This document shows, piece after piece, positions 10,581 through 64,000 of a stretch of DNA of 64,000 bases. Below the pieces are notes generated by a model that worked only from the letters and a program-made list of their open reading frames with translations, had not been told where the DNA came from and did not search any database. The stretch is taken from NCBI GenBank assembly GCA_010909165.1, contig MU008164.1:1240001-1304000 (forward strand), written 5' to 3'. How positions within the stretch are numbered: position 1 is the first letter of the stretch; the number at the start of each line of letters is the position of its first letter. The translations under genes and the position numbers were made by a program. The stretch comes from Anthoceros angustus. Taxonomy: Eukaryota > Plantae > Anthocerotophyta.

Positions 10581-10970
10581 AGCTGGCGCAAGCGGCACAC
10601 ACAAGGTTGTTGAGGATCGCCAACATCAAGCTTGCTTTGCTGCGCTTAGCGCTCCTGTAACAGAAAGATGCGCAAGTGAGCCAGCCAGCCAACCTGCAAC
10701 TCTGGTCCACAGAATATATACGTACACTGCTCGTCGGAGCCACCAGCCCAAACCCGCCGCTCCTGGGGCGGCGTCCAAGGGTAAGACAGCGGGAGGTTAG
10801 GCCCCGCCCCCGACCCTCTCCTCCATGGGTGGCAGGATCGTCAGAACCTCTTCAATCCCCTGGTCTGAAAGCGTTGAAGTGCTGTGGGGATACTCGTGGC
10901 ACGACCGGTCTGGCTCCAAACCACCCCTGCGGCCGCCATGTCCAACAAAACCAAAGGATCAGAGCCCACC

Positions 10971-38836: not shown

Positions 38837-38867
38837 AACATGATAATCTTGGAAGGGGTTAATATAC
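38837..38867 (+). repeat. Left terminal inverted repeat (candidate TSD GCCC at 38833-38836)
   Basis: aacatgataatcttggaaggggttaatatac; its reverse complement matches 62202-62230 with one mismatch and a 2-nt gap. Confidence 0.72.
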
Positions 38868-39083
38868 AAACCCCTTCCGCTCGAAACCCCTTCACAAAAA
38901 GACAGTTGGAAATGCAAAGATCCTCAGTTAACGACACCATGCTAAATACGAAGGGAAAAAACATTGATATTTCACAATTCATAAAACAGGGCTTCTTGGC
39001 GTGGCTGGCGGTACCGCCATATCCTTGCCAACTTTGACCTGAGTAATGAAAGAAAATCACGATATCACATTTCAAAACCCCTC

Positions 39084-42000
39084 TTAGTCCCTCGAATATA
39101 GTCTTTCCTCTACAAAGATCCCTCGGTGAGGGTGATCGAGACTCATCTGCGCTTGGGTGGCCAGATCTAAAACAAGCGCCATGTTGCGCATGCGTTCAAT
39201 TCTACTACATGGTATCGGTCTACTGCCGGGGCCTTCATCATCTTCTGCGTTGTCGCCTTCGTCCTTGTCGCCACCACTCCCGGTGGCACGATTATCCGAG
39301 GTTTGTTGTCCTTCCTCTAGCAAGTCCCGTTTTGCGTTTTCATCCTCCTTGCACTAAGTGGAACCACGAGCTTTGAACAATTTTTTCGCTAATACAAACT
39401 TCTTTAGCCAATTGTCTTGCTCCTCTCCGGTGGGCCTCGAATGTGAGCTCCTCTTTCCGATCAGCAAAACCTCGAAACCATGTATGCGTTGTGGGATATA
39501 ACCACGGAGGTCGACCTCTATTGCAATAGAATTGCGTCCGAGCAATCTTGCCGATGTTGTTGTCCACTTCTGCGCAACCATCCGTAATCCAATCTCCTTC
39601 TTTGAGAATGTTTTGATGAATTTCATCATCAACGAGAGGTCTTTGGTAGGCACACCACCATTTTGTCTTGAGACATGTACACCTTCTTCACCACGGTATC
39701 ATGTGCAATCACGGATCGTCCATTGTTAAAAGTCCCTGCGTAATATTGGGCGTCATAGCCGCCGCCTTGAGCCTTCCTTCACACACCAAGCAAGCTTATG
39801 TACTCCACGTCTCAAATCCACCCTGTCATTACTCATGTTTGTTTTGTCCCAAGCGAAGGACACCATTCCACCCTTGCCACATAATCCACGCATGCACTCT
39901 CTCACAAGGTGAGCTTCTTCCACTCCGTGCATGACAATGAGCTGAATTCTTCCGTCGTCTTCTCACGGAAGCTTTGGAAGCTGTGTTCATCATGCACGCA
40001 TCAACCGACTATCCATAGGACCAATGTCAAAGCCTCTTGGGACATCCATAACGAGAAGGGTATAAGCCCGTCAAGGAATCCCGCATCTCCATAATGTTTC
40101 TTTTTCCACTTGATAGTAACACTTTCTCGGACCACAGAGCGGTGAACAAGTGCGGTCGTCTTTCAAATCCTTGTCGGCGATTGCAGCTCATCCTCAAGAC
40201 TCTTCCAGTTGTTAATCTCAAATATGAAGTTCTTGAAATCCTCCGGCAGCTTTTGCAAATTCTCCACATCCTTTATTTGCTGAACGCCAGGGAAAGAAAA
40301 AACGTTAGAGCAGGGACACCACATTCCTATTGTATTCAAACAAGCAGTGACGATGACGAAGGAGGGTGTGAAAGACGCCGGCCGACCGGCGCCCTTCACA
40401 CCCTCCATCGACAAATTTGGTTTGCAGGCCTGCACCATGCGGCGGGCGCCGGCCCGGCCGGCCCGCTGCCACAAAGATAGGCGGGGGCGAAGCCATCTCG
40501 CAGGCGCCGGCCGGTGGCTCCCGTGACATTGTCGTGGTGACGGATCTCACCTTCCAGAAAAGCCGTTTGAAACCGAGCAATCATGTCGTCGTTGAGTGTA
40601 GAGGATATTCCTTCCTCACTTCCTCGAAGATGAGCACTCGGATGTTTAGCCATGGCCACTTGAATAACATGCGGTTTCTTTCTTGAAGTAATTTCGTCCT
40701 CCATTCCTTTGAGATCGAGGATGCACAGCCGTTACCTTCCTGTGACAAGAATCTGCGCCCACATTCACCTTGGTATACCACGGAATGATTTCCAGGGTTT
40801 GCATGTCTTCGGCTTGAAATACCTTTGTTTCCACGTGTTTGGGATCATCTGTGACTTTCCTTTTCCCTTCCCTTCTTCTTTGGTGCAGCGGTATGTGCTT
40901 CTTCCTTTCGTAACTACTTTGCTTCCCACTTTGAAAAGATCTTATCAATATTATCCCATACCTTGCTTGAGATGCAGATGTGTGTCCTGTTGTCCACTTT
41001 GTTCGCTTGTACACGTCATCTTGCCCTTCATCATCTTCAATTAATCCAAGAACCTTATAGAGATTGAACTTCCAGGACATGGTCATCTGCACTCCATCAC
41101 GGCGCGCAATAAGAAGCTCATCCCGTAAATATCTAACCTGTTCAATAAAAGACATTTTCTTCCGCTTGTCAGACATTGTGTTATGGTCGGTTGCAAGAAC
41201 TCTCATCTCAGGCACCGTAAGCCCACAGTATACATGCGCTTCAACATATTGAAAACGGGACTTCCCCGGAGCAATATCTGCCAAGTGCTTCATAGCAGCA
41301 TATGTGTGGTTCCCCCCAAGTACACCCATAATATATTTCTTGGCCCTGAATTTCTGCCAGTCCAACTTGCTAATATCGTTGCACTCCCCGGGGTCAATCA
41401 TGCATGTGGCGAGAACCCTTCTTCAATCCTTCCCTTGAAATAACTCGGGCTAGGTAGTTTGACCATGCCTCGTCCACCCTCGATTTGGGCATCGGTGTAA
41501 TAAAGATCTTGGCTTCAAATTCTCAAGCTTTACCGATCTTGTCTCGGAACAACTTTCTTGGCATAGGCGAGTCACGATTATTGTCAATGGGTCGATTCCG
41601 GATAGCATCTTCAAGTCTTTCCTCATCTGTCGCATGGAGATCGCTATATCTGGTGGGCTTCACTCACGGTTTCCTTCTGATTTCTTCTTTCTCTTCCCCA
41701 GTGGAGCCTCGCTATGTGAGCGGTATGCTTGGCGTGCCCACCATGCCTTGCTCTCCCACTCGAGTCCCCTGTCTCCATACTCTCGGATCAGGCGGACACG
41801 GAGGTGCCTCAATAGAAGCTGCCTCGCCCGCCCACCTTTCGGCCACCGTCTCTTCCGCAACAAGTGCAGGCGTACGCAATCAGGCGTGGCGCCCAACCCT
41901 TCAGTGTGCCTTGGGAACCCGAACCGGTTGGGGTCTGGTGGCAGTCTCCGGCCTCTACTCGCGGGAGGCGCGGCGGCGGCGCCTCCTCCCTCGGATCGAC

Positions 42001-43058
42001 ATTGGGTACCTCCATGGAGGAGCCGGAAAAGGAATGTCCGACAGCATCCTTCCATCCTCTGCCTCCCGAAAGTCGTCATCGTCGGGTGGCCAGGGCGTCG
42101 GGTATACACCCATCCTCCTCATCGGATGGGCCGAGCTCACTAGGCGCACTTGCGCTCGGCGGTGAGCCCGTCATGCACATTCATCGGCTCGACTCGTCGT
42201 TGTGACATTTCCCTCCTATCTTTGGATGGCGGATTCGGTAATCTTCCGCATATGGTCGTGGTGCTCTAGCTTCGAGCATCCGCAAAACAGAAAAGGATTG
42301 AGGAAACGCAAGATAGAAGGCACAAGTCATGGAAACCAACATACAACGATTTGCATCAACCTTGAAAACCTTATTCCAAAGTTTTACTTACGTTGGCATA
42401 GCATTTCAAATCCTCCACCAGTTTGAAGGACGCACTTCTTGCTTTGGAAGCCATGTCGACCTCATAAGCCTTGTACATGGTTTCATCTTCGCTTATCCGA
42501 TCAAATACCAAAGGCTTTGTTGTGTACAGATCAAACATGTGCTCTCGTCCATCCATATCCACGGTCGCCCATAGAACCCAGCCAGCCCTTGCTCTCTGGT
42601 TTGGCAAGGCCCCCTTGAACCCTACGACCCACAGTTTCAATAGAGGAGTCCAAAAATTGTTCTCCTCCGAAGGCTCCTCATCCTGTCAACATCCGGTCCT
42701 TCTCGAGCGAGCATGGCCTCCACCTTGCTCCCCAACCGACGTGTAACAGTATCCTCATAGTTAAATGGCGTTGGAATAGGGCGATTGCGTGGGGTCTCTT
42801 CCTCGGTCTCCTCCTGCGCCTTCTCCTTCGTTGTGGCCTTCCCCGGATGTTAGTGCCCGATTTCCATGCCCAATTGACAAATTACCTCCGTGGTGCTTGA
42901 TGGCTGGTTGTCTCGCCCCTCCAGGAGGTAGGGCTGCCTTCTCCGACATCCACACGAAATTCCGCCATCCTTCTTCTTTCTGGGCCGGGATTTCTTGGTT
43001 TTGGGCATCGTCGATGTTCGCCTCAGTTCTCACGTTCCTTCCTACCGTCTTCCGCCAT
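39084..43058 (-). CDS. Transposon cargo gene: unknown N-terminal domain + ParB/Srx-like domain + beta-class N4C/N6A DNA methyltransferase, ~3 exons, ~1200 aa after frameshift correction
   Basis: Putative exons ~43058-42345, ~42281-40551 and ~40279-39084. Intron 2 has a GTGAGA donor, a CTAAC branch point, a pyrimidine tract and CAG. ParB-like: YIMGVLGGNHTYAAMKHL..VEAHVYCGL..LATDHN..MSFIEQ. MTase: HYGDAG..YTLLVMDVP(R)G near 40040 and YQKDLSLMMKFIKTFSK-EGDWITDGCA(G)SGTT..ARLLGRNSIAIEVD at 39500-39650. Multiple 1-2-nt indels must be corrected. Confidence 0.75.
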
Positions 43059-43167
43059 CCTCAAGAGATTAGATACAATGATACATAGGCGGTAATTCAA
43101 AGAAGGAATCGGTCCAACTTGAAGGAAATTTGCGAGCAAGGGGGAGGGCCATCAAGACTATATGTGA

Positions 43168-45020
43168 ATGGCGAAGAGGAAATGGCGGAGGATCGCGAGC
43201 GTGGAGAAAGCGTCTTTGGGAGGCGCCAAAAGTCCTTCGCTCGAGAGCTCCTGGCGAGGCGGCCGCCGTCCGTCTGGCTCAGAACTTTCGTCTCTCGTGG
43301 TTACTCTCCACCGAAAGTATGACGCCCGTTGTCACGTCATACACATGTCTGCAACCCTAACCATAAATGTCAATTAAGGTAATGCTTACATTTATTTCAA
43401 AAGGACATGTGAACCCCAATGCCGAGAAAACAATGAAGAGGCGGTGTGCCTCAGCGCCAAGATCTACCGGTGAAGATCTTTCGGTTTATTTGCTCATAAT
43501 GGCATTTCCACCTTACCTTGATCACGATGCCTATGTCATGGCATACCACGCTCTGTGAAGAGTGAGGACCATATTTCCAGGTTAGAGGTGCGGAGTCCTC
43601 GGTGGCGACAATGTTGCGCGCCACACACATCGGTTGTCGAAGAGGTCGAGTTTTTTTCGTCCAAAGTTCATTCCTCGCCGTTTGTGCGATCAAGGGGAAC
43701 ATGTACTTGAGAACAAGTGTTGGGTTTGCATCGTCTCCGTCTCGATCCATGTAATGACATTGATGTTGTCGCGGGAGCAGTGTGAGGAAGAGGGGTCTTT
43801 TGATTTCCGGATGGTAGGTGACTCTCTTGTGAGGAGCCAAGGATGGTCAGATCTTGAATGGGGCCCCGGCCCTTCCGATCATGAGCAACAGCGAGTCCGA
43901 ACTCCAAGGTTAGTTTGCCTTCAACAAAAAGCGCTTGTTTGCGGTGAAGACAATGTTGTGGCGAATAGTCCACCCCATCCGTGGCGGATTCCATCTCATG
44001 CACACGCACGCAGTGGTATTGCGGTAATGCTCGTCGCCATCGACAAGCGTCCTCTCCGGCATTCCGTGGGGTGCCCATGACCCCGTGAACTTGAACTTAT
44101 ATCGCCATTGATGGGAATCCACGCATCGGGCGAAGACACCGGGAAGGAAGGGAGATGGGGTGCGAATCCCGTCGTGGTTTGTTCCGCCAAGGAGCGATGT
44201 CGAGGATGACCGCGAGTTCTTCCACAAGCAAATGATCCGTGGTGAGGATGGGGATGATGACTTTGTTCACCCTCCTCCGCTGGTGCATCTGGAACATTCC
44301 ATCCCAAGCCTTTAAGTGAGACATTGATGACAACAAAGCTTTTACGGCGGACAAGCCGTGACGGCGCGGGGTGTCTTTGCAAAAATGTGATGAGAAGGTG
44401 ACGGCGGACTTTCTTAAACCGTGTTGCAACCAAATGTGCATGCGAGGTTGACCAAGCAAGGCCTTGAGCAACGATATAGGTTCCTCACAATGCGAGGCAA
44501 GAGCAAGAGACATTTTCTTCAAAGCCTCGTACATCGGGACCCGAGTCAAACTAACAAAGAAAGAGTTTTACGCATGTTATGGGATCGGTTCCTGTACTGT
44601 TGCGTGAAGGCCTTGAAGAGTATATTGTATGGGGCTGTGATACGAGGAAGGCGAAAGGGAGGGTCATGAGGAATGCCCGTGGGATAGTGTTCGAACCAAC
44701 CCAATTCATAAGTCCGTCATGCACTTGGTGCTCTAGCGTGGATGGATAATGCTTTTCATGGGTGAAAGACTTCGACGTGCGGTGTATAACGCGACACCTA
44801 TACAAAGCGGAGATATGGTCATTGTACAAACGGCGGTTCAAAGCTCAGTGCGGTTTGTGGCCTGTGGTTTTGAAGTTATGGAAATCTAACTTCAGAGTGA
44901 AGATTCCCAAATCCAACAGTTCTCGACCGCTCAATATGTCAGGTTAAAGACCACCATTCGAATACAACTCGGAAGGTTGATCAAGGTAGATATCACTCTA
45001 CCACTAGTACAACCCATCTC
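43168..45020 (+). pseudogene. 5' half of the Sola-like transposase gene (copy 1; truncated before the catalytic domain)
   Basis: KPCCNQMCM..YACYGIGS..HLYKAEIWSLYK..LWKSNF.VKIPKSNS is the N-terminal region of the gene completed in copy 3. The sequence jumps back to 40550-equivalent DNA at ~45470. Confidence 0.7.
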
Positions 45021-45470
45021 AGGTGGAGGAGTTTTTCGTGTTCATCCCATAGTTCGCCGAATGAGCGGTGGTATGCGGATGGTTCGAAAACTGAGTGTCG
45101 GCGGGGTGGGCGCCGGCCGCGCCCACCCTCGGATGACGACGTTTGGTTGCACAGTACCATGTTTGAAACTCGCAGTCCCTGTTCATGGATGGCCCACAGG
45201 TTGTAGGTTTGATTGGTCGAGTTTGAGGTTGGGGCCGGCGCCGGCTGCCGGCGCCCCAGGCCATCCACCTTCAAACTCGCCAACCATAATATATGACCTA
45301 GAAGGTGGACGTTTTGTAGATTTTAGATTGGGAAGATGGTAAATGTATGTGTGAAGAGGTGATAGTCCACGACATCGGTTTGTTGTATGCAATGGGTTTC
45401 ATGGATTCTGTCTTCGCTTGTGGTGTGGAAGAAGCGTGTTTGTATGTGTGAAATTGGGAGCGTGATCACC

Positions 45471-48400
45471 TTCCCAAAGAAAAGCCGTTTGAAACCGAGC
45501 AATCATGTCGTCGTTGAGTGTAGAGGATATTCCTTCCTCACTTCCTCGAAGATGAGCACTCCGGATGTTTAGCCATGGCCACTTGAATAACATGCGTTTC
45601 TTTCTTGAAGTAATTTCGTCCTCCATTCCTTTGAGATCGAGGATGCACAGCCGTTACCTTCCTGTGACAAGAATCTGCTGCCCACATTCACCTTGGTATA
45701 CCACGGAATGATTTCCAGGGTTTGCATGTCTTCGGCTTGAAATACACTTCCACGTGTTTGGGATCATCTGTGACTTTCCTTTTCCCTTCCCTTTCTTCTT
45801 TGGTGCAGCGGTATGTGCTTCTTCCTTTCGTAACTACGCTTCCCACTTTGAAAAGATCTTATCAATATTATCCCATACCTTGCTTGAGATGCAGATGTGT
45901 GTCACTTATCCACTTTGTTCGCTTGTACACGTCATCTTGGCCTTCATCATCTTCAATTAATCCAAGAACCTTATAAAGATTGAACTTCCATGACATGGTC
46001 ATCGCACTCCATCCGACGCAATAAGAAGCTCATCTCGTAAATATCTTACTGCTCAATAAAAGACATTTTCTTCCGCTTATCGACATTGTGTTATGGTCGG
46101 TTGCAAGAACTCTCATCTCGTGCACCGTAAGCCCACAGATACATGCGCTTCAACATATTGAAAACGGACTTCCCGCAATATCAAGTGCTTCATAGCGACA
46201 TATGTGTGGTTCCCCAAGTACACCCATAATATATTTCTTGGCCCAATTTACGCGATCCAACTTGCTAATATCGTTGCACTCCGGGGTCAATCATGCATGT
46301 GGCGAGAACCCTTCTTCAATCCTTCCCTTGAAATAACTCGGGCTAGGTAGTTTGACCATGCCTCGTCCACCCCTGATTTGGGCATCCGGTGTAATAAAAG
46401 ATCGGCTTCAAATTCTCAAGCTTTACCAATCTCGAACAACTTTCTTGGCATAGGCGAGTCACGATTATTGTCAATGGGTCCGATTCCGGATGGCATCTTC
46501 AAGTCTTTCCTCATCTCGCACATGATGATCGCTATATCTGGTGGGCTTCACTCACGTTTCCTTCTGATTTCTTCTTTCTCTTCCCCAGTGGAGCCTCGCT
46601 ATGTGAGCGGTATGCCTGTTGCGGCGTGCCCACCATGCCTTGCTCTCCCACTCGAGTCCCCTGTCTCCATACTCTCGGATCGGCGGACGGAGGTGCCTCA
46701 ATAGAAGCTGCCTCGCCCGCCCACCTTTCGGCCACCGTCTCTTCCGCAACAATTGCAAGGCGTGCAATCAGGCGTGGCGCCCAACCCTTCAGTGTGCCTT
46801 GGGAACCCGAACCGGTTGGGGTCTGGTGGCAGTCTCCGGCACTCGCGGGCGCGGCGGCGGCGCCTCCCTCCCTCGGATCGACATTGGGTACCTCCATGGA
46901 GGAGCCGGAAAAGGAATGTCCAAAGAACGGAGCATCCTTCCATCCTCTCGCCTCCCGAAAGTCGTCATCGTCGGAGTGGCCAAGGGCGTCGGGTATACAC
47001 CCATCCTCCTCATCGGATGGGCCGAGCTCACTAGGCGCACGCTGGCTCGTGAGCCCATCATGCACATTCATCGGCTCGACTCGTCGTTGTGACATTTCCT
47101 CCTATCTTTGGATGACGGATTGTAATCTTCCGCATATGGTCGTGGTGCTCTAGCTTCGAGCATCCTGCAAAACAGAAAAAGGATTGAGGAAAGGCAAGAC
47201 AGAAGGCACAAGTCATGGAAACCAACATACCACGATTTGCATCAACTGACTTGAAAACCTTATTCCAAATTTTTACTTACAGTTGGCTGACGCATAGCAT
47301 TTCAAATCCTCCACCAGGTTTGGAGGACTGCACTTCTTGCTTTGGAAGCCATGTAGGCTGACCTCATAAGCCTTGTACATGGTTTCGTCTTCGCTTATCC
47401 GATCAAATACCAAAGGCTTTGTTGTGTACAGATCAAACATGTGCTCTCGTCCATCCATATCCACGATCGCCCATAGAACCCAGAGCCCTTGCTCTGGTTT
47501 GGCAAGGCCCCTTGAACCCTCGACCCACGGTTTCAATAGAGGAGTCCAAAATTGTTCTCCTCAAGGCTCCTCATCCTGTCAACATCCGGTCCTTCTCGAG
47601 CGAGCATGGCCTCCACCTTGCTCCCCAACCGACGTGTAACAGTATCCTCATAGTTAAATGGCGTTGGAATAGGGCGATTGCGTGGGGTCTCTTCCTCGGT
47701 CTCCTCCTGCGCCTTCTCCTTCGTTGTGGCCTTCCCGGATGTTAGTGCCCGATTTCCATGCCCAATTGACAAATTACCTCCGTGGTGCTTGATGGCTGGT
47801 TGTCTCGCCCCTCCAGGAGGTAGGGCTGCCTTCTCCGACATCCACACGAAATTCCGCCATCCTTCTTCTTTCTGGGCCGGGATTTCTTGGTTTTGGGCAT
47901 CGTCGATGTTCGCCTCAGTTCTCACGTTCCTTCCTACCGTCTTCCGCCATCCTCAAGAGATTAGATACAATGATACATAGGCGGTAATTCAAAGAAGGAA
48001 TCGGTCCAACTTGAAGGAAATTTGCGAGCAAGGGGGAGGGCCATCAAGACTATATGTGAATGGCGAAGAGGAAATGGCGGAGGATCGCGAGCGTGGAGAA
48101 AGCGTCTTTGGGAGGCGCCAAAAGTCCTTCGCTCGAGAGCTCCTGGCGAGGCGGCCGCCGTCCGTCTGGCTCAGAACTTTCGTCTCTCGTGGTTACTCTC
48201 CACCGAAAGTATGACGCCCGTTGTCACGTCATACACATGTCTGCAACCCTAACCATAAATGTCAATTAAGGTAATGCTTACATTTATTTCAAAAGGACAT
48301 GTGAACCCCAATGCCGAGAAAACAATGAAGAGGCGGTGTGCCTCAGCGCCAAGATCTACCGGTGAAGATCTTTCGGTTTATTTGCTCATAATGGCATTTC

Positions 48401-50365
48401 CACCTTACCTTGATCACGATGCCTATGTCATGGCATACCACGCTCTGTGAAGAGTGAGGACCATATTTCCAGGTTAGAGGTGCGGAGTCCTCGGTGGCGA
48501 CAATGTTGCGCGCCACACACATCGGTTGTCGAAGAGGTCGAGTTTTTTTCGTCCAAAGTTCATTCCTCGCCGTTTGTGCGATCAAGGGGAACATGTACTT
48601 GAGAACAAGTGTTGGGTTTGCATCGTCTCCGTCTCGATCCATGTAATGACATTGATGTTGTCGCGGGAGCAGTGTGAGGAAGAGGGGTCTTTTGATTTCC
48701 GGATGGTAGGTGACTCTCTTGTGAGGAGCCAAGGATGGTCAGATCTTGAATGGGGCCCCGGCCCTTCCGATCATGAGCAACAGCGAGTCCGAACTCCAAG
48801 GTTAGTTTGCCTTCAACAAAAAGCGCTTGTTTGCGGTGAAGACAATGTTGTGGCGAATAGTCCACCCCATCCGTGGCGGATTCCATCTCATGCACACGCA
48901 CGCAGTGGTATTGCGGTAATGCTCGTCGCCATCGACAAGCGTCCTCTCCGGCATTCCGTGGGGTGCCCATGACCCCGTGAACTTGAACTTATATCGCCAT
49001 TGATGGGAATCCACGCATCGGGCGAAGACACCGGGAAGGAAGGGAGATGGGGTGCGAATCCCGTCGTGGTTTGTTCCGCCAAGGAGCGATGTCGAGGATG
49101 ACCGCGAGTTCTTCCACAAGCAAATGATCCGTGGTGAGGATGGGGATGATGACTTTGTTCACCCTCCTCCGCTGGTGCATCTGGAACATTCCATCCCAAG
49201 CCTTTAAGTGAGACATTGATGACAACAAAGCTTTTACGGCGGACAAGCCGTGACGGCGCGGGGTGTCTTTGCAAAAATGTGATGAGAAGGTGACGGCGGA
49301 CTTTCTTAAACCGTGTTGCAACCAAATGTGCATGCGAGGTTGACCAAGCAAGGCCTTGAGCAACGATATAGGTTCCTCACAATGCGAGGCAAGAGCAAGA
49401 GACATTTTCTTCAAAGCCTCGTACATCGGGACCCGAGTCAAACTAACAAAGAAAGAGTTTTACGCATGTTATGGGATCGGTTCCTGTACTGTTGCGTGAA
49501 GGCCTTGAAGAGTATATTGTATGGGGCTGTGATACGAGGAAGGCGAAAGGGAGGGTCATGAGGAATGCCCGTGGGATAGTGTTCGAACCAACCCAATTCA
49601 TAAGTCCGTCATGCACTTGGTGCTCTAGCGTGGATGGATAATGCTTTTCATGGGTGAAAGACTTCGACGTGCGGTGTATAACGCGACACCTATACAAAGC
49701 GGAGATATGGTCATTGTACAAACGGCGGTTCAAAGCTCAGTGCGGTTTGTGGCCTGTGGTTTTGAAGTTATGGAAATCTAACTTCAGAGTGAAGATTCCC
49801 AAATCCAACAGTTCTCGACCGCTCAATATGTCAGGTTAAAGACCACCATTCGAATACAACTCGGAAGGTTGATCAAGGTAGATATCACTCTACCACTAGT
49901 ACAACCCATCTCAGGTGGAGGAGTTTTTCGTGTTCATCCCATAGTTCGCCGAATGAGCGGTGGTATGCGGATGGTTCGAAAACTGAGTGTCGGCGGGGTG
50001 GGCGCCCGGCCGCGCCCACCCTCGGATGACGACGTTTGGTTGCACAGTACCATGTTTGAAACTCGCAGTCCCTGTTCATGGATGGCCCACAGGTTGTAGG
50101 TTTGATTGGTCGAGTTTGAGGTTGGGGCCGGCGCCGGCTGCCGGCGCCCCAGGCCATCCACCTTCAAACTCGCCAACCATAATATATGACCTAGAAGGTG
50201 GACGTTTTGTAGATTTTAGATTGGGAAGATGGTAAATGTATGTGTGAAGAGGTGCTAGTCCACGACATCGGTTTGTTGTATGCAATGGGTTTCATGGATT
50301 TTGTCTTCGCTTGTGGTATGGAAGAAGCGTGTTTGTATGTGTGAAATTGGGAACGTGATAAACTT
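45471..50365. repeat. Internal tandem copy 2 of 40550-45465 (ParB part, N-terminal exon, 5' transposase)
   Basis: Constant 4892-bp offset with identical ORF translations over ~43000-45000 versus ~47900-49900; the rest aligns with many indels. ParB motif region at ~45590-46520. Lacks the MTase exon. Confidence 0.92.
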
Positions 50366-51875: not shown

Positions 51876-52108
51876 TGTAAGGGTATTAAAGCCCAACATA
51901 CTAGACTAACACTTAGTCTAAGTTAGGTGTCGCTATATCATTAGTTTAGCTTAAGCTAATCACTAGGAAGCTTCTCCTTCCTAGGAGCTTCTTGTGGAGC
52001 TTAGGAGCTATTGAGGGTATAAATACCTCCAAGCCTCATCTCAATGTGAGAGCTACACTTGCCTCCTCCTCTCCTCTCCTCTTTCCATCATGGCGCCACG
52101 ATCCTTCA
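51876..52108 (+). repeat. 5' LTR of copia element
   Basis: tgtaagggtattaaagc...gatccttca, with TATA-like gggtataaatacc. Confidence 0.92.
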
Positions 52109-55100
52109 ACCGGTATCGAGCCATGGTTTGGTTGTGTTGTGATGCTAGAATAGTCAGTAGGTGATCCAGAGCAATTGCAGGCAACGCGCGAGCAGCGAGG
52201 GCGAGGCCGTGAGCGGGCAAAGCCGCGACCGGCGCGGGCGGCACGGCGAGGCCGCGGCGACACCTGAGCCGGGCCGCTGGGGCGTGGGAGCGGCCGCGGG
52301 CGGGGCCGGCGGACGCGGCCAGTCAGACGCGCCGGGCGCAGCCGCGGCGCGCGCTGGGGCGCTGGGCTGCGGGCCTGGCGGGGCGCGGCCGGGCGCTGGG
52401 CGCGGGCGCGGGCGCGCAGTGCCGGGCGCCGCGCTGGGCCTCAGGGCGGGCTGGCGGCGCCGCTGGGCGGCGCGGGGCCCGCAGCGCCGGGCGCCTGGGG
52501 CCCGGGCCCGCAGCGCGGCGCGCCAGCGCCGCGCGGGCCCGCAGCGCTGGCGCCCGCAGGCCCGGGCGGGCGCGGCAGCGCGAGGCCGCTGGCGCCGCGG
52601 CGCTGGCGGCGCGCGGCTGCCGCTGCAACGCCGAGGGCGCCGTACGCGAGGCCGCTGCCGCTGGCGGTGGCACGGCTGGGCGCTGGTCAGGCGCGGGCCG
52701 CGACGGGCGTGGCGCGGTGGCCGCGCGTGTGTGTGGCGCGGGCAGCCGACGCGGCACAGAGTTGAGTGCCGAACGCTGAGTAAAATTCACGAATATTCGG
52801 TGGATAATCAACGTAAAATACACGCCGTGACGGATCGCTTTCTTTGACTTTGACTTTTCTAACAAGGCGAGTCGAGTGTTTAGACGATTTTTGATCATGA
52901 TGTCTTCATCGTAAAACGCTATGTAATATCGAGAAGTTAGATGGTACTAACTTCCCGCTCGAAAGAACAAGTGTATAATGTTCTAGTGCGTAAAAAGCGT
53001 ATCAAGCCCATAAAGTTGTTAGGCCAAACCGTATATGACTGATGAGTGGCGTGGACTCGATGAGCTTGCTAGATCTACTATCATGCTAACATTGTCAAAA
53101 CAAAGTTTCAATGTGAAAGATAAGACCACGAGTTACGGAGGTGTCTGTGACCAGATGAGAAGCAAAGCGGCTTCTCGTGTATTGGTTGAAACAAATTGGT
53201 GGACTTGAAGATGAAGGAAGGGACGAGGATGTCCGATCATCCGAATGATTTCAATACCATTTTCAGCCAGCTCTCATCTCAAGGTATCACGCCCCATCTG
53301 AGAGCTATGTTTCGCTGGTCACATTACTGAGAGTTGGGACACCTTCGCATGCCTCGAGTAATTCTCGCCTCGCTAGTGGTCTTACCATTGTAAATGTAGA
53401 AGGTAGCCCGTTAACCGAGGAGGTGAACAGAAAACATGGAACCTTCCAAAGGTTCCAAAGCTCATAGTGAGAGGGAGGTCCACCGCGAAGAAGCAACCGA
53501 TGTAAGCTTCTCTAGCAAATCTCGTAGTCGTAATAAGAATGTGGAGTGTCACTATTGTCAAAAGGGGTCACTTCAAAGAGAGAGAAGTTCAAAAGGACCA
53601 AGGAAAGAGAAGAAGGTGACGACAAGAAGGCGACTTCGTCTGGTTGGAAGAGTTAAACTCGCTGAGGACGGAGATGTCCTTATCTCTTCTTACTTGAATG
53701 CCGCACAATTAACACCGTGGATAGTCATTTATTCTCGCAATTGGATAATTGACTCGCATCTTTCCATGTTCAGAGAGTGGTTTAGCACGATGATGCTACA
53801 AGGAAAGGATGCGTTAGGCTTGGAAATAACTATGCGATCGCAGCGAGGTGATGTGCAACTCAAGTTTGACAACGGATCTTCATTCATGTCAAGGACGTTA
53901 GGCATGTTCAAGTTGACAAAGAGCATGATTAGCGCAGATGCTTGATGATGCCGGTTACCACCGCCGGTTTGGGGATCACTCTTGGAAGATCTCCAAAGGT
54001 TCTCTTGTGTTAGCTCGTGGATCAAGTGGCACTTTGTACTCACTTGTGTAAACACCGCCAAAGATCATGTGATCTGACAGAGCCAAATGTTTCCTTGTGG
54101 CATTGCTTGCTAGGACATATGTCTCAAGGGAATGAAGGTTTTATCTCGCTCGTTATATCCTCGTTTAACTTCTCGATCTCTCGATGTGTGAGCACTGCTT
54201 ATATGGGAAATGACAAAATCATCACATCGAGAGGTAAAAGTAGTAGAGTAAACCTCTTGAGTTGGTTCACAGTGATGTATGTGGACCTATGCCATCGTGA
54301 TCATTAGGCCTCCTATTTTGTCACTTATAGATGATTTCACGCAAGGTGTGGGTTTATCCTTTGAGGAAAAGGATGAAGTTCGACGTTTTAAATTTGTCAC
54401 CCTTGTAGAGAATCACCGCCACCGATTGAAGTGTCTAAGGACGATAATGGTGAGTATGTTTCGAAGCTTTCAGCCATTCCGTGATTCCAAGGGAATCAAA
54501 GAGAATTGATCGGCAGATACTCCTCCACAAAATGGTGTGCGAGGATGAATGTAACCATTCAGAGAGGATGCGAGTTTGTTGTCAAACTCGATTGCCTAAT
54601 GGGTTTTGTGTAAGCTGTTCACCGCAGCTCATCTTATTAATGATCTCCTAATAAGGTCGTTGATGAGTTGTTCCAGAGGAGCTATGGTCCGAAAGAAACC
54701 ATCCTACAAGCATCCGCGAGTGTTTGGTCGTGAGGCATACCGCCATGTTCCAAAAGAGTTTCGGGACAAGTTGGCACCTAAGTCCAAGAAATGTATTTTT
54801 CTTGGCTATGGTGATTCCGTGAGATGGGATACCGCTTGGGATCCAGGCTAGAAAGGTTGTTCAGATTAACGACGTGTTCTTCAATGAGAACAAGATGCAC
54901 AAGCCTACTCCAACCGTGGAGGTGCGAAGGGTGATCTTCCAAGAAGATGGACATGATCATCATGGTGTTGATAACGCGTGCGAGCACATTCCTCCACCGT
55001 AGATGAACCAAGAGTCGAACAAGCACCTATAGAGGTTCGTCAGAGGTCGCAGATTACACGACCTCGATGTATGATCCATCTCGGATTATGTTATGCCGAC

Positions 55101-56603
55101 AGATTGGGGAACCCTCTTCTTACAAAGAGGCCATGTCAACGAGTAACAAAGAGAAGTGGGAGAAGGCCATGCAATGAAATGAATTCCGATAAGAACCAAA
55201 CTTGGGAGTTGGTTCGTTGAAGGATAAGGCACTACTGCAAATGGGTGTACAAGATGAAGGTCATACCGCTTGATGGCAAACCAAAGTACAAGGCACGATT
55301 GGTTGCTAAGGGTTTCAAGCAACAACTGCATTGACTTTGATGAGATTTTCTCACCAAGAGTCAAAATGACAACTGCGATGTGTTCTGCTTTGGTTGCCGT
55401 GAATGATATGGAACTTGTGATGGATGTCAAGACGGCATTCTTGCATGGTGACCTTCAAGAGGACGTCTACATGAACCGTAAGGTTTTGTTGAGAAGGGCA
55501 AAGAGCATCCGTGTGCGGTTGAGGAAGAGCCTTTATGGTTTAAAGCACCCGAGAGTGGTATCACAAGTTCCACTCATTTATGCTTTCTCAAGGCTACAAA
55601 CGAAGCGATGAGGATCATTGCCTCTATAAAGCAAGCTAAGGATCAAAGCTTGCTCATTTTGATCCTATGTGGATGATATGCTAATTGTAACAAGATCGAT
55701 GAGATTTCGTTGAAGTCAAAGTTGAATGCTCACTTTGAAATGATGACTTGGGAGAGGCGAGCCATATACTTGGCATGCGATTCGAATGTATACAAGCGCC
55801 CCGCTTTATTTGTCTCGCATTTTAATACATTAACAGGTGCTTCAACGCTTCAACATGGAGAAGGGAAGCCATTGGGTACCCATTGCCTCCATATGTGAAA
55901 CTTTCTGGATTGCCCAAGCTCGAGGAGGACAAAGTCGAAATGGAGAAGGTCCCATACTCATCGTAGGGAGTTTGATGTATGCAATGATTGCTACACGCCC
56001 GACATTGCCTTTGCAAGTGAGTGGTTAGTGTGTTTATGTCAAACCTCGCAAGAAGCATTGGGAGGCAGAAAGGAGTTATGAGGTATCCGAATGGTACAAA
56101 AGCTTTGTGCATATGTTTTGGTAGTGAAGATGCATGTGTGGTTGGGTACGATGCCGATTATGCGGGATATGGACAAAGGAGGTCCACATCAGTTATGTCT
56201 TCATGTGCACCGGAGGGGCGCCTCATGGCGATCTCGCTTGCGGCATTACGCTATCTACCACAGAGGCCGAGTATGCAAAGAATCGAGGCTTGCAAGGAAG
56301 CCATGGCTTGCCTGGGGAGACTTGGGGATCAAGGTTGAGTCGCTGTTGCATTGTGATAGCCGAGTGCTATCCAATTGGCAAAGAATCCATGTTTCATGCG
56401 AAGACTAAACATGTGGATGTGAAGTATCACTTCATTCGAGAGGTGTTGGACGACAAGAGGGTACAACTTGTCAAGGTTCACACCACCAACCCCGCAGATA
56501 TTCTTACCAAGGGACTCTCTACGAGCAATTTGCACAAGCTCTGACATCGATGGGCATGAGATAGTCCATTCTCTGAAGGTAAATTGGCCTTTAAGTGGGA
56601 GGT

Positions 56604-56853
56604 TGTAAGGGTATTAAAGCTCAATGTACTTAGACTAATACACTTAGTCTAAGTTAGGTGTCCATATCATTAGTTTAGCTTAAGCTAATCACTAGGAAGC
56701 TTCTTGTGCTCCTTCCTAGGAGCTTCTTGTGGAGCTTAGGAGTATTGAGGGTATAAATACCTCCAAGCCTCATCTCAATGTGAGAGAGCTACACTTGCCT
56801 CCTCCTCTCCTCTCTCCTCTTTCCACCAAAGATGGTCGCCCTACGATCCTTCA
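56604..56853 (+). repeat. 3' LTR of copia element
   Basis: tgtaagggtattaaagc...gatccttca, preceded by the PPT. Confidence 0.92.
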
Positions 56854-57584
56854 CTCATAAGCCTTGTACATGGTTTCATCTTCGCTTATCCGATCAAATA
56901 CCAAAGGCTTTGTTGCAGCAAGATCTCAAACATGTGCTCGTCCATCCATATCCATCGCCCATAGAACCCAAATTTTGCTCTGGGTTTGGCAAGGCCCCTT
57001 GAACCCTACGACCCAGTTCAATAGAGGAGTCCAAAATTGTTCTCCTCCAAGGCTCCTCATCCCGTGTCAACATCCGCCCTTCTCGAGCGTACAGTGGCCT
57101 CCACCTTGCTCCCCAACCGACGATGGCAACAGATCCTCATAGTTAAATGGCGTTGGAATAGGCGCTGATCGATGTGGGGTCTCTTCCTCGGTCTCCTCCT
57201 GCAGCCTTCTCCTTCGCCGGCCTTCCCGGATGGCTGCCCGATTTCCCATGCCCAATTGACAAATTACCTGGGGTGCTTGATGGCTGGTTGTATCTCGCCT
57301 CCACCGGAGGTAGGCTGCCTTCTCCGACATCCACACCAAATTCCGCCGCATCCTTCTTCTTGCCGCCGGGCCGGGATTTCTTGGTTTTGGGCATCGGTCG
57401 ATGTTCTCGCCCGTTCTCCACGTTCCTTCCTACTTGTCTTCCGCTTGCCATCCTCAAGAGATTAGATACAATCTGCCATAGGAAGCCAGCGCAATTCAAA
57501 GAAGGAATCAGCGTCGCACAACTTGAAGGAAATTTGCAGAACAGGAAGGGGGAGGGCCATACCGCAAGACTATGTGAATCGCGG

Positions 57585-60500
57585 CGAAGAGGAAATGGCG
57601 GAGGATCGCAGCGCGTGGAGAAGTCGCGTGCTGGGAGACAGCGCCAAAAGTCCTTCGCCTGCTGAGAGCTGATGCTGCTGAGGCGGCCGCCACCGTTCCG
57701 TCTGGGCTGGAAGAACTTCCTCTCCTCGGTTACTCCACTTGAACCGAAAGTATGACGCCTGCTCGGTCACGCCATACACATGTGCCAACCCTAACCATAA
57801 ATGTCAATTAAGGAAATGATTACGGAAAACCATTTATAGGACCCTAAGTCAAAAGCCGCATATGTGAACCCCAATGCCGAAAACAATGAAGAGGCGGTGT
57901 GCCTCAGCCGCCAAGTTCTACCGGTGAAGATCTTTCGGTTTATTTGCTCATAATGGCATTTCCACCTTACCTTCACCACTCCGCCTATGTCATGGCATAC
58001 CACGCGCGTGAAGAGTGAGGACCATATTTCCAGGTTAGAGGTGCGGAGTCCGCCGGGCGACAATGTTGCGCCACCCACACATCGCTTGTCAAGAGGTCGA
58101 GTTTTTCGTCCACAAAGTTCATTCCTCACGCTTTGTGCGATCAAGGGGAACATGTACTTGAGAACAAGTGTTGGGTTTGCATCGCCTCTCCGTCTCTGTC
58201 ACCCATGTAATGACCGACATTGATGTTGTCGCAGCAGAGGTGTGGAAGAGGGGTCTTTGATTTCCGGATGGTAGGTGACTCTCTTGTGAGGAGCCAAGGA
58301 TGGTCAGATCGAATGGGGCCCGGCCCCTTCGATCATGAGCAACGAAAACGAGTCCGAACTGGTTAGTTTGCCTTCAACAAGAAACAGCTTGTTTGCGGAA
58401 GACACATCCGCGTGGCGATTCCATCTCATGCACACCGCAAAGTGGTATTGCGGTAATGCTCGCCGCCATCGACAAGCGCCCTCCCCGATTCCGCGTGGGG
58501 TGCCCATGACCCCGTGAACTTGAACTTATATGCCGCCATTGATGGAATCCGCATCCGCGAAGACACCAGGAAGGAAGGGAGATGCGTAATCCGTCGTGGT
58601 TTGTTCCGCCAAGGAGCGCGCGAGGATGACCGCAGGATCGAGTTCTTCCACAAGCAAATGATCCGTGGATCGAGGATGGGGATGATGACTTTGTTCACCC
58701 TCCTCCGGCTGGTGCATCCGGAACATTCCATCCCAAGCCTTTAAGTGAGACATTGATGACAACAAAGCATGACAAGCAGCGACGCAGCGTGTCTTTGCAA
58801 AAATGTGAAATGGAGAAGGTGACAGACTTTCTTAAACCGTGTTGCAACCAAATGTGCATGCAGAGGTTGACCAAGCAAGGCCTTGAGCAACGATATAGGT
58901 TCCTCACAATGTGGTGCAAGAGCAAGAGACATTTCTTCAAAGCCTCGTACATCGGGACCCGAGTCAAACTAACAAAGAAAGAGTTTTACGCATGTTATGG
59001 GATCGGTTCTCTACTGCTGAAGGCCTTGTAAGAGTATATTGTATGTACAACAGATACGAGGAATCGAAAGGGAGGGTCATGAGGAATGCCCGTGGGATAG
59101 TGTTCGAACCAACCCAATTCATAAGTCCGTCATGCACTTGGTGCTCTAGCGTGGATGGATAATGCTTTTCGCTCATGGTGAAAGACTTCAACGCAGTGTA
59201 TAACCGCCCGACACCTATACAAAGCGGAGATATGGTCATTGTACAAACGCGTGTCAAAGCTCGTCCGCTTTGACGACGCTGCGTGGTTTTGAAGTTATGG
59301 AAATCTAACTTCACCGAGTGAAGATTCCCAAATCCAACAGTTCTCGACCGCTCAATATGTGCAGTTAAAGACCACCATTGAATACAACTGGAAGGTTGAT
59401 CAAGGTAGATATCACTCTACCACTAGTACAACCCATCGGTGGGAGGAGTTTTCGTGTTCATCCCATAGTTCGCCGAATGAGCAGGTATGCGGATGGTTCG
59501 AAAACCGAGTGTCGAGGGTGGGGGCGGCCGCCCACCCTCGGATGACCGACCGCCAGAGTTGCCCGAGTACCATGTTTGAAACTCGCAGTCCTTGTTCATG
59601 GATGGCCGGGTTGTAGGTTTGATTGGTCGAGTTTAGGGGCCGGGCGCGGCCGCCGGGCGCCTGGCCCCATCCACCTTCAAACTCGCCAACCATAATATAT
59701 GACCTAGAAGGTGGACGTTTTGTAGATTTTAGATTGGGGAAGATGGTAAATGTATGTGTGAAGAGGTGATAGTCCACGATCGGTTTGTTGTATGCAATGG
59801 GTTTCATGGATTGTCTTCGCTTGTGGTGGAAGAAGCGTGTTTGTATGTGTGAAATTGGGAACGTGAAAACTTGGAAGGATGTGACACTTGGAACGCGGTG
59901 GCGAAAATATCGGCCGCGTAGAGGCACAGGCTGGAGGAGCGGGAAAAATGGCAAAACACCGTGAAAAGAGTTACAGGAACCGGATAAGTACATGCTCCTC
60001 GCTATAGACGGAATGGACCAAGAAGACCGAGATTCCACACTGCGTTGGCCAAAGAATCTTGATGAGGATTGCCGTGTATCTGTGCACGTAGTGGGTTGCA
60101 TGATCCACAATTATACGTACGCAGCAAGAGTGTTTTGCACTATGCCAATTTGAGGAACGATGCGAATCGACAATCGGATTATTCAAGATGTTATTCTTAA
60201 TTATAAAGGAGTGCTACCCAAAGTGCTCTATTTGCAGCTTGACAACACTTGCCGGAAAACAAGAACCACTGTTGTTTGCGATTTGAACATGCTAGTTGAT
60301 ATGGGAACTTTTCAAAGGTGAAGGTTCCTCCTTGTTGGGCACACTCACGACCAAATCGACCAAATGTTCTCTTGCTTTTCCAAAAGCTTGAAGCACAAGG
60401 AGGCACACACTCTTCCGCGTTGGCATAATTTCATGCATACACGCCTACACCGGAGATCAAAGTTTTGCGGAGGTCCCGACTTCCATATGTATGGATTAGA

Positions 60501-61473
60501 CAAGGCGATGGTCATATTCATCGGTGAGAAAATTGAACAACTTATCTTTCCAGACGTTTTAAAATCACGAGAAGACAAACCGACTGGTGCGATGAATTAG
60601 GAGCAAGCAATATTCGACATCGATGTATTGGGAAACCGAAGCCGGGTTGGAGTTTTTGAAATTTGTCCCTCCAACGATATAACAACAAGACGTACCGCCG
60701 GCCTCCGGCTCGAGACAAAAAGGGACGTCGGCAGGTTATCTCAAGGAGTGGCACATTTGAGAGCGGGTCCTGAGCGCCATATGTGAGGACAATATGGATG
60801 GTGGGAAGCATTTTGGGTGGACCAAGAAGAAATCGCAATAATCGTGGAGAACAACATTGGGCTCGCACTAGAAGTGCCGTGGAAATGGTTCTCTCGAATC
60901 GGAAGAAACAGAACCACTCCAAGTTCGATGAAGCTATCCTAGAGGAGGCGTTAAGAGAACTCCCCAACGGATATGTACTTGGGGCCTTACCGAGCTTGGG
61001 AAGGCGCAGCAGAAATGGCACGCATGGAGATGTAAAAGACATAAAGGAAGGATGTTCATCGCAGACCTTGTACCGATACGCATAATCGGCCTTCCGGATT
61101 GGGAAAGTTAATCGTGAGGTTGGATGTGGAAGAGCCGTTCACCGGTACAGGATCGCACGATGCATATGAAGGCGTATACGTGGAAGAATATGTGATTCCG
61201 ACCCTTCCACCGAGAGTGGGATTGGAAGGAAAAAGGGTGGGAAGGCAAATTTCAAGAATGTTCAAGAAGTCTTCATCAATAAAACCGTCATCTTGTATTA
61301 TGGGTTCGTTTGAATTCCGTAAACATCTCTATTCCATTGACAAAAAGCGATCGGATAAGTTGAATGAATTGCGGGGCTTCATCGAGCCAACCAAAGTGCA
61401 CCAAGATAGTGACGAAGACGGTGAGGACATCGGGCCCTTGGACATGGAAGGTGTCAATTCGGGAGATGAGTGA
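57585..61473 (+). CDS. Sola-like DDD transposase (copy 3, only copy with catalytic core), probable intron ~59432-59920, many frameshifts
   Basis: CCNQMC N-terminal region, then KHREKSYRN.DKYMLLAIDGMDQ (60001-60021), VHVVGCMIH, LPKVLYLQLDNTC..NKNH (60235-60246), LVGHTHDQIDQMFSCFS (60337-60369), and a C-terminal HGDVKDIKEG..IGKLIV region ending in TGA at 61473. Confidence 0.82.
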
Positions 61474-64000
61474 AAAGATGTATGAAGTGGCAAACATCGG
61501 TGGACATCGGTGACAAGAGGGTTTACTCTCGGTCAGTGTCTTGACCGCCAAGTGTTAGGCTCAAAGTGGGAGCTCGCGTTAGTGATAGGGAATCACTGTT
61601 GGTGCTATCATTCGGTGGTTGGAAGTTGAAGAAGTTGGAGTCACTCGCCGTAGGTTGCGAGTCGGCGACATGGACAAATGGTGGCGCCGGTGGGCGGCGC
61701 CCGCCATTTTCACCATCCTTTAGTAGCATGGAAACCGTTTTCCGCACCGATCATGTATTGTACATTTTGTTGACCGTATATAACCCATCCATCCGCATGC
61801 CTAAATCCTAAATCGTTTGAGGCTAGTGGCGCCCACGGCGCTCGAGGCCCCTTCTTGCCAAAACAAAAGACTATGGGTTACGGGACGGTTCGGAAAGAAG
61901 CACCATTCTTTACCAATGATGGTGAAGATTGCGCAATGTCTTCAAAAGACCTTGTTTATTTAGGCGTGCCTCAACAACCCGTTCCCTTTTAGTCCTTAGG
62001 GTACTTATGGTAAGCAAGCATGGGTCGTAATATGCCAAATTCGATGGCGAACTCGCTAACCCTTTGTGTGATGGAACCTTTGCTCGGACGTCAATTTCAT
62101 CCCTTATCGACCCTTATTTTCAGGCCTTTGGACGATGTTGCCCAAAGCGTGAATCGACCCATCCCAAACCCCTTCCGACGATATTTGGTTGAAAACCCTA
62201 CGTATATTAACCCCTCAAGATTAGCATGTTGCCCAATTACGCCCGCCTTCTTGTTGGCGGTCATCCACGCAGCGCATACGCCACCGCCTTTCGTCCTCCC
62301 GCCCCATTACCTCGCGTTCGCGTGGCCGCATCATCGCGCCTTCTTGTGGCCGCAACACGCAAAACCAACGGCGCGCCGAGCCATCGCGCCCTCGGGCTTC
62401 ATTCCCAGCCTTGAATAAGCGCTATCCACCCCTGACACTTGCCTCTCCCGTCCGCCCCATCGCGGGTACGCGCACTTCACCCGATTCGGTGCGGGCCTCT
62501 ACCTGAGGGATTCCTCGACGATGTAGCCCTCATGCGTCGTTGCGAGCAGCGCCCTGTCTCTCGGATATGGCCATGGTTCCACGATTTACAAAACTTGTCG
62601 CCGTGCTTGGGTCTTCACATAGCGGCGGCGTATCAGAACTTCCCTCCTTGCGCGCCTCCGGAACCTCCCCTCCCCTTCCCCCCAACCTCCCGCGCCCGCT
62701 CACACCGCCGCCTCACGCTTGCCCGGCCGCACACTCGCTTGCCACGCACTGCCTGCCTGCACCGGCCCCGTTCCCGCCCCCGGACCGCCCCGGCCCGCCC
62801 GCCCGGCGCCCCGCTCACCCGGCCCTCCCGCTCCAGGCCCCCCTCCCGGGCGTCCGTCCGCCCGGCCACCCGCCCGGCCGCCCGCCCGCGCCCCGGCCGC
62901 CCGCCCCGCCCCGCCGCCGCCCCGCCACGCCCGCCCGTCCGCCCGGCCTATTATGGGTTCGCTTTGAATTCCGTAAACATCTCTATTCCATTGACAAAAA
63001 GCGATCGAGGATAAGTTGAATGAATTGCGGGGCTTCATCGAGCCCGGCCAAAGTGCAGATAGTGGCGAAGGCGGTGAGGACATCGGGCCCTTGGACATGG
63101 AAGGTGTCAATTCGGAGATGAGTGAAAAGATGTATGAAGTGGAGGCAAACATCGGTGGACATCGGTGACAAGAGGTTTACTCTCGGCCGAAGTGTCTTGA
63201 CCGCCAAGTGTTAGGCTCAAAGTGGGAGCTCGCGTTAGTGATAGGGAATCACTGTTGGTGCTATCATTCGGTGGAAGTTGAAGAAGTTGGAGTCACTTCC
63301 ACAGTAGGTTGCGATGTCGACAGGACAAATGGCGGCGCGGTGGGCGGCGCCGCCGCCATTTTTCACCATCTAGTAGCATGGAAACCGTTTTCCGCGATCA
63401 CATTATTGTACATTTTGACGCTATATAACCCATCCGTCGCATGCCTAAATCCTAAATCGTGGAAATTGGGTAGCTCGGCGCCCGGCGCCTGGCCCTCTTG
63501 CCAAAAACAAAAGACTATGGGTTACGGACGGTTCGGAAAGAAGTACCATTCTTTACCAATGATGATGAAGATTGCCCAATGTCTTCAAAAGACCTTGTTT
63601 ATTTAGGGCATGCCTCAACAACCCGTTCCTTTTAGTCCTTAGGGTACTTATGGTAAGCAAGCATGGGTCGTATGCCAAATTCGATGGCGAACTCGCTAAC
63701 CCTTTGTGTGATGGAGACACCGCTCGGACAATTTCATCCCTTATCGACCCTTATTTTCGGGCCTTTGGACCGATGTTGCCCAAAAGCGTGATCGACCCAT
63801 CCCAAACCCCTTCCGACGATATTTGGTTGAAAACCCTTCTATATTAACCTTCAAGATTATGTTGCCCAATTACGCCCGCTTCTTGTTGGCGGTCATCCAC
63901 GCCACGCCACCCGCCCCTCGTCCTCCGCCCCATGCTTCTCTGCGTTCGCGTACGCATCCGTCGCGCCTTCCCGTGGCCACCAACCCAAAACCAACGGCGC
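61297..64000. repeat. ~1.65-kb tandem duplication (61297-62948 / 62949-end) of the transposase 3' end, right TIR and flank
   Basis: tattatgggttcg..tgaattccgtaaacatctctattcc at 61297 and 62949; the copies align with indels through the TIR and the flanking gcccaattacgcccg. Confidence 0.9.
62202..62230 (-). repeat. Right terminal inverted repeat (candidate TSD GCCC at 62231-62234)
   Basis: gtatattaacccctcaagattagcatgtt followed by gccc. A noisier duplicate lies at ~63840-63866. Confidence 0.72.

Follow-up and report, generated by a model that had tools for sequence, protein, structure and literature searches.

A decayed Sola-like transposon of Anthoceros angustus and the transposase/ParB-methyltransferase gene pair of its streptophyte family

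The window described here is a stretch of 64,000 nucleotides from Anthoceros angustus (contig MU008164.1 of assembly GCA_010909165.1, positions 1,240,001 to 1,304,000). Window positions 38837-62230 are very probably the decayed remains of one inserted cut-and-paste DNA transposon of Sola type, a member of a family whose copies carry a transposase gene and a divergently oriented accessory gene. The accessory protein combines a ParB-like domain with a beta-class DNA amino-methyltransferase (MTase)-like domain. The gene pair is a standing, conserved architecture of the element family across streptophytes and not a product of chance neighbourhood. Both genes of the window copy are pseudogenes, and the copy is dead, old and rearranged. 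The layout is already known in kind from the brown alga Ectocarpus (2025, PMC12477816); what is new is its streptophyte-wide conservation, the evidence that selection has maintained the accessory gene, and the D-x-P-Y form of a catalytic motif.

The element is bounded by 4-bp target-site duplications (TSDs) that read GCCC at 38833-38836 and again at 62231-62234. Immediately inside them are terminal inverted repeats (TIRs) of 31 nt on the left (38837-38867, +) and 29 nt on the right (62202-62230, -). Both the left terminus and the reverse-complemented right terminus (62230-62202) begin with AACATG, and the only differences between them are one mismatch and a 2-nt indel. A subterminal hairpin (GGAAGGGGTT / AACCCCTTCC) occupies 38851-38878, starting within the left TIR, and the hairpin at the right end is degenerate. 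The full span is 23.4 kb. Subtraction of two extra copies of an internal repeat and of a nested copia retrotransposon leaves about 9 kb. The initial annotation had described a unit of about 9 kb, which is correct for the element so reduced and incorrect for the span now present.

Transposons of the Sola1-3 superfamily were described by Bao, Jurka and Kapitonov in 2009, as summarised in PMC10741241. They encode a DDD transposase, generate a 4-bp TSD, have TIRs of 11-1124 bp, measure 2-9 kb with some exceeding 15 kb, and are known in a moss (PMC10741241). The window element agrees with these traits in its GCCC duplication, its TIRs of 29-31 nt and its size of about 9 kb, and its DUF7869 transposase is probably of the DDD type. 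The term Sola-like, already used in the initial annotation for a TIR- and TSD-bounded element at this site, is supported by these sequence features. The available part of the classical Sola description mentions no accessory gene.

The transposase gene lies on the (+) strand. Its N-terminal Cys-rich domain (KPCCNQMCMQRL) is found at 58630-59028. Decayed paralogous pieces of this block are also present near 44261-44666 and 49150-49560. The catalytic core, 59917-60597 (+), is interrupted by three in-frame stops, and two of its pieces match DUF7869 in Pfam with E values of 1.5e-13 and 2.7e-06. Aligned with the transposase of Riccia sorocarpa over 200 aa, the core shows 35% identity (E 1e-28); the Riccia protein itself matches DUF7869 at E 3e-54. 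Three acidic motifs read from the sequence, DGMDQ, LQLDN and GHTHDQIDQ, follow one another within the DUF7869 match as putative catalytic motifs. The NKN that follows DN in the second motif of Riccia is lost in the window. The open pieces at 60601-61470 (+) are presumably the C-terminal remainder of the gene and have no match to the relatives. DUF7869 clusters occur widely among animals and streptophytes; their models have a structural likeness to the ISAzo13 DDE transposases of bacteria. The literature search on DUF7869 yielded no papers. In intact members the transposase would cut at the AACA termini and insert the element with a 4-bp duplication.

The accessory gene is located on the (-) strand at about 39357-41653, head-to-head with the transposase gene. 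Three regions can be recognised. The ParB/sulfiredoxin (Srx)-like domain at 41003-41653 contains a GGNH..A motif and is identified by HMMER, tblastn and the family model. A middle region at 40111-41002 has conserved WE..K.K and EEFP.HT blocks and is broken by a shift of frame near 41000 and by a stop near 40915. The MTase-like domain, a pseudogene, is at 39357-40110 and is seen in a three-frame reading and in weak collinear matches to the Chara braunii protein P0038 and the Riccia MTase. The longest open piece of the gene runs from 40649 to 41422 and begins with the GGNH..A domain. The three-frame reading gives the beta-class order: ...YTLLVMDVPRGF (motif IV), ...VPTKDLSLMMKFIKTFSKEGDWITDG, then TTTSARLLGRNSIAIEVD (motifs X and I). 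Motif IV is DVPR (about 40049-40038), flanked by in-frame stops near 40073 and 39990, and DVPR is a lesion private to this copy. The region of motifs X and I lies at about 39660-39500; a frameshift near 39580 falls inside motif I, which is degenerate (DGCAEV / TTTSARLLGRNSIAIEVD). The broken pieces line up in the same order as the PF01555-bearing family proteins of Chara and Riccia, from the ParB-like domain and both middle blocks to motifs IV, X and I.

Run X1, which is DNA of the same organism, bears on the decay of the gene. Its contigs show alternative 1-2-nt indel states at many positions within 39374-39695 and 41171-41432, so the frameshifts are specific to individual copies. At 41312 and 39695 every X1 contig differs from the window. 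Word depths in the same-organism DNA contigs reach the hundreds over the conserved domains only, which indicates that the family is multicopy. The initial annotation had suggested that this copy might mark its own DNA. Since both of its genes are pseudogenes, the copy is unable to write any mark.

Relatives of the accessory protein are few. An exhaustive HMMER search with the 258-aa ParB-like open reading frame (ORF) across 1.84 billion representative proteins recovers only 38, and the named ones belong to Chara braunii (many), the liverwort Riccia sorocarpa and the fern Adiantum nelumboides, which has the accessory gene. Six loci in at least four organisms have a DUF7869 transposase gene and a ParB-MTase gene arranged head-to-head: Riccia loci L002, L006 and L007, which represent three subfamilies, Chara locus L008, the 8.6-kb metagenome contig L005 and the window. 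The species share no nucleotide similarity here, as judged by blastn of the window element against the loci of Riccia and Chara.

The proteins of the pair can be compared with those of Riccia L002 as the reference. L006 shares 62% identity in the transposase, 73% in the ParB-like part and 70-83% in the MTase part. For the L007 partner the values are 37-47%, 40% and 49%; for Chara L008, 30%, 22% and 26%; and for the window, 35%, 25% and 26%. By these identities the transposase and the accessory gene diverge in parallel across the loci. Between Riccia subfamilies the ParB and MTase parts have a nonsynonymous divergence (dN) of 0.10-0.22, and synonymous sites (dS) are saturated. The accessory protein is therefore maintained by selection on the element. 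The transposase follows the same pattern, with a dN of 0.28. Copies of the same Riccia subfamily give a dN/dS of 0.5-1, the range expected of decay after insertion. In the divergent gene pair described in the initial annotation, the accessory gene is an integral and conserved partner of the transposase, found beside it at six loci.

Individual relatives add detail. At L007 a ParB-MTase gene of a divergent subfamily is flanked by two transposase fragments that belong to different subfamilies, with 37-47% and 58-77% identity to L002 (5563-6163, -; 9266-11502, +; 13769-16283, +), which suggests adjacent or nested elements. The Chara P0002 gene model (L004:10001-39538) encodes 1825 aa over 29.5 kb, with two ParB-like and two MTase domains, and probably merges two element copies through annotation. 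The Riccia L002 copy is probably truncated by an insertion resembling a long interspersed nuclear element (LINE). Its right end is set by a break in homology between L002 and L003 at 14170. This right end and the left end of the window element both begin 5'-AACA, and some 15-20 nt in from each terminus there is a short, perfect hairpin, at about 14130-14151 in L002; the sequences are unrelated. The window TIR motif is absent from the relatives' loci that were examined.

Intact relatives match the beta-class MTase family PF01555 in Pfam. Chara P0038 (699 aa) and P0002 have PF01555 (N6_N4_Mtase) at the C-terminus, with P0038 scoring 33 bits. A single Riccia ORF, L002 12840-13802, contains an intact domain that scores 36.3 bits, and the gathering cut-off is 26.7 bits. 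Against the PDB, the family MTase profile matches the beta-class enzymes TTHA0409, M1.HpyAVI, CcrM, MboIIA, RsrI and bdelloid N4CMT. An AlphaFold 2 (AF2) model of the domain, with a predicted template modelling (TM) score of 0.79, matches CcrM with a Foldseek E value of 1.5e-13 and a TM score of 0.77. N6-adenine enzymes rank above N4-cytosine enzymes among its structural matches. The family alignments have the motif order IV ... X - I of the beta permutation, which is readable in the window too. The consensus over all loci is D-[VFLA]-P-Y-G-[FYW] for motif IV, which occasionally reads DFPC or DALY, and D-x-[FC]-[SA]-G-[ST]-G-T for motif I, of the FxGxG type that binds S-adenosylmethionine (SAM). 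An intact accessory protein would methylate an exocyclic amino group of DNA, with N6-adenine a likelier target than N4-cytosine.

The ParB-like domain is recognised mainly by its predicted structure. Weak feature matches link it to the DGQHR, ParB_N and DUF6551 clusters of a protein atlas. Its AF2 model, with a predicted local distance difference test score of 78, matches the N-domain of Myxococcus ParB over 89 residues (Z 6.9, root-mean-square deviation 2.3 A). Rows 1-23 of the structural matches are all ParB, Noc, KorB, PadC or sulfiredoxin. The GxxRxxA motif of ParB, whose arginine is linked to cytidine triphosphate (CTP) or nucleotide, is absent; the equivalent position reads G-G-N/x-H-S-x-x-A-R/K. 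The accessory protein of intact members would bind the element's own DNA.

Repeated palindromes occur in one relative. A 29-bp palindrome (TGGCAACYCATGCGNCGCATGRGTTGCCA) recurs in Riccia L002 in at least seven exact-pattern copies, along with further variants. They form a cluster at 10310-10626, with single copies near 3147, 5093, 8354, 12357, 12413 and 13840. The cluster lies at the 5' end of the ParB-MTase gene, on the side that faces the transposase, and the palindromes are a candidate parS-like binding array. The window's element has no repeated-palindrome arrays of the Riccia type. A near-perfect 28-nt palindrome (86%, 4-nt spacer) is present there in a single copy, at 40354-40413, between the middle region and the MTase domain.

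Several results weigh against this account of the element and its gene pair. Placement in Sola1 in particular is tentative and draws on the match to DUF7869 and on the precedent of Ectocarpus. Pfam gives no match on the window's own MTase and ParB pieces, so the PF01555 domain expected from the initial annotation is found in the family and not in the broken window copy. Neither single sequences nor the family profile give a ParB match (PF02195) when searched against Pfam and the PDB, and phmmer of the ParB ORF against the PDB yields noise only. The ParB/Srx-like fold is accepted with moderate confidence on the strength of the predicted model, at a Z score under 8. No transposase is found within 10 kb at Chara L001 and L004; solo or rearranged copies therefore exist too. 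The left end of the Riccia L002 copy was not found, and the placement of both genes between TIRs is for that reason established in the window only, even though the pair itself recurs in Riccia, Chara and the metagenome contig. None of the listed RNA runs contains the window stretch, and no material from run X2 could be matched to it. Finally, in the canonical motif IV, (D/N/S)PP(Y/F/W), the first proline is missing from every family member. The family has the MTase fold and lacks the defining catalytic motif.

The missing proline is central to the alternative that survives best, in which the MTase-like domain is inert family-wide, comparable to the MTase domain of DIRS1 or to METTL14. The accessory protein would then be only a DNA- or SAM-binding factor, possibly for transpososome assembly, copy-number control or tethering. 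Such a role is possible but somewhat unlikely. Inactive MTase domains have been noted in DIRS1 elements by Iyer et al., and the GGNH of the ParB-like domain takes the place of the ParB arginine motif, both of which agree with a non-catalytic protein. However, purifying selection acts on the domain, and even at an overall identity of about 25% motif IV keeps its D, P and Y and motif I its SAM-binding SGSGT. In DPPY it is the main chain of the first proline that touches the substrate, so a hydrophobic residue in its place need not abolish catalysis. The conserved D, P and Y together with the SAM loop would favour activity, and the chances that intact copies are catalytically active are judged to be about even. 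The fuller proposal is that intact streptophyte members, such as the near-intact Riccia sorocarpa copies, encode an active amino-MTase that is targeted by the ParB-like domain to the element's palindromic arrays. It is put forward tentatively and is doubtful at present.

The internal structure of the window copy is complex. A 4.9-kb segment is present as two tandem copies at 40547-50359 (40547-45466 and 45466-50359), which are 96.8% identical by self-comparison. It comprises the 5' part of the ParB gene, the intergenic region and the 5' part of the transposase gene. A third copy, about 86% identical, is in two pieces (51064-51865 and 56854-59895, the latter running on into the transposase core) because a Ty1/copia long terminal repeat (LTR) retrotransposon of about 5 kb is inserted at 51875-56853 (+). 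The copia element has ORFs that match RVT_2, gag_pre-integrs and SH3_retrovirus. Its LTRs (51875-52108 and 56603-56853) are 234-250 bp long, have TG..CA ends and are about 89% identical, and it is flanked by an approximate 5-bp TSD, (T/C)TCAT. The last ~935 bp of the transposon recur with the same flanking DNA at 62949-64000 (+), with 88.7% identity by self-comparison. This pairs 61296-62374 with 62949-64000 at a period of about 1653 bp, and it is a later segmental tandem duplication of the right junction rather than a separate insertion. As the right end is duplicated along with flanking DNA, the locus has been struck by tandem duplication at least three times. In the history of the copy, the 4.9-kb segment underwent tandem triplication, copia inserted into the segment, and duplication of the right junction came later.

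Assembly error could in principle produce the triplication and the duplicated junction, with a simple element of about 9 kb as the true locus. High-identity tandem repeats are typical sites of mis-assembly, and the sole DNA run found consists of low-coverage short contigs, too short to span the repeats. This explanation is nonetheless improbable, as collapse or expansion artefacts are normally near-identical, whereas the repeat copies differ by 3-14%, the junction copies differ by 11% and copia is present in one copy alone.

The remaining alternative, in which a host or horizontally acquired ParB-MTase gene is a bystander or the product of a one-off capture, could appeal to the Chara loci without a nearby transposase and to the many annotated family members that are stand-alone gene models, but it is very improbable and already largely refuted by the recurrence of the head-to-head layout at six loci in at least four organisms without nucleotide similarity, by the parallel divergence of the two genes, by their position within one TIR/TSD pair in the window and by the like arrangement of the published Ectocarpus element. 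Bacterial contamination was also considered and is rejected: plant genes surround the element, and copia is inserted in it.

The closest known system to the streptophyte family is Sola1-1_Ec32 of Ectocarpus, a 21.5-kb element in which a gene on the opposite strand encodes ParB-like and DNA MTase domains (PMC12477816; Genome Biol 2025). The MTase is predicted to make N4-methylcytosine (4mC) or N6-methyladenine (6mA), and its authors propose that the protein binds and marks the element's own DNA (PMC12477816). In their described layout, both are Sola-type transposons with an opposite-strand ParB-like and MTase gene. The family described here differs in its streptophyte hosts (Chara, a liverwort, a fern and Anthoceros angustus), in the size of the element (about 9 kb), in the length of the accessory protein (about 650-700 aa versus 1104 aa) and in the D-x-P-Y form of motif IV, which is described only for the family treated here. 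No stramenopile proteins are among the relatives retrieved with the accessory-protein searches. The initial annotation knew of no description of this combination, and in this it is superseded by the Ectocarpus report, which has the same pair and the same hypothesis. A literature search found no published report of a transposase/ParB-MTase pair in land plants or charophytes.

Giant transposons of the red alga Bostrychia, of the Plavaka and also the Mutator type, carry the accessory genes PAG2 and PAG3 (bioRxiv 2025.02.11.637652). In Plavaka, an N6A-methylase/SET protein and a ParB/2-oxoglutarate (2OG)-oxygenase protein are encoded beside inverted-repeat arrays (bioRxiv 2025.02.11.637652). These inverted-repeat arrays beside ParB genes have a parallel in Riccia L002, where the 5' end of the accessory gene holds the palindrome cluster. 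Plavaka differs in belonging to another transposase superfamily and in having MTase-SET and ParB-2OG oxygenase as two separate proteins.

Bacterial and phage enzymes offer a further comparison. In fold and in the motif order IV...X-I, the family resembles the bacterial beta-class N6-adenine MTases CcrM, M.RsrI, M.MboIIA and M1.HpyAVI, and it shares with phage ParB-MTase fusions a fold like that of the ParB N-domain upstream of the MTase. Unlike the bacterial and phage enzymes, to which identity is 15-21%, it has a D-hydrophobic-P-Y motif IV, is located in a eukaryotic transposon and has introns in the Chara gene models.

Prokaryotic-type beta-class amino-MTases are also found in eukaryotes as Marchantia MpDN4MT1a/b and bdelloid N4CMT, and the N4CMT structure is a significant fold match to the family. 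No ParB domain is reported for either. DN4MT1 is a host gene expressed in sperm and has a canonical TSPPY motif. The derivation of Marchantia DN4MT1 from this transposon family is unsupported: it has the TSPPY motif and no Marchantia protein is among the relatives retrieved. No link was found between the family and DN4MT1, which the initial annotation names as one of the rare eukaryotic beta-class amino-MTases. In chlorophytes, ParB-linked Dam-type MTases have been described by Iyer et al.

The surroundings of the element include further repeats and two apparently intact host genes. C-rich low-complexity tracts with a 10-nt period (CCCGCCCTCG-like) lie on either side of it, at 36556-37363 and 62692-62931, and contain long spurious proline-rich ORFs. 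A 1.77-kb tandem duplication at 4115-5882 and 5872-7646 is 95.9% identical, with internal sub-repeats of about 55-110 bp; the ORFs there have no Pfam match. The host genes each consist of a long single exon and encode an equilibrative nucleoside transporter (17366-18754, -; PF01733, E 3e-67) and a zf-C2H2_2 protein (22767-23885, -; E 4e-28).

The window copy itself contributes nothing functional, and the significance of the finding lies in the family. The layout, to which the brown-algal report devotes one sentence, is extended to the plant lineage, in a charophyte, a liverwort, a fern and Anthoceros angustus. Transposons with their own DNA-modifying enzyme are rare, and they are relevant to the evasion or exploitation of host silencing. 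If intact members are active as proposed, a land-plant transposon would write its own 6mA or 4mC mark, independent of the host 5-methylcytosine (5mC) machinery, and the D-hydrophobic-P-Y motif would be a new catalytic variant of the beta-class enzymes. The Riccia copies are concrete natural candidates for the writing of 6mA or 4mC by a plant transposon.

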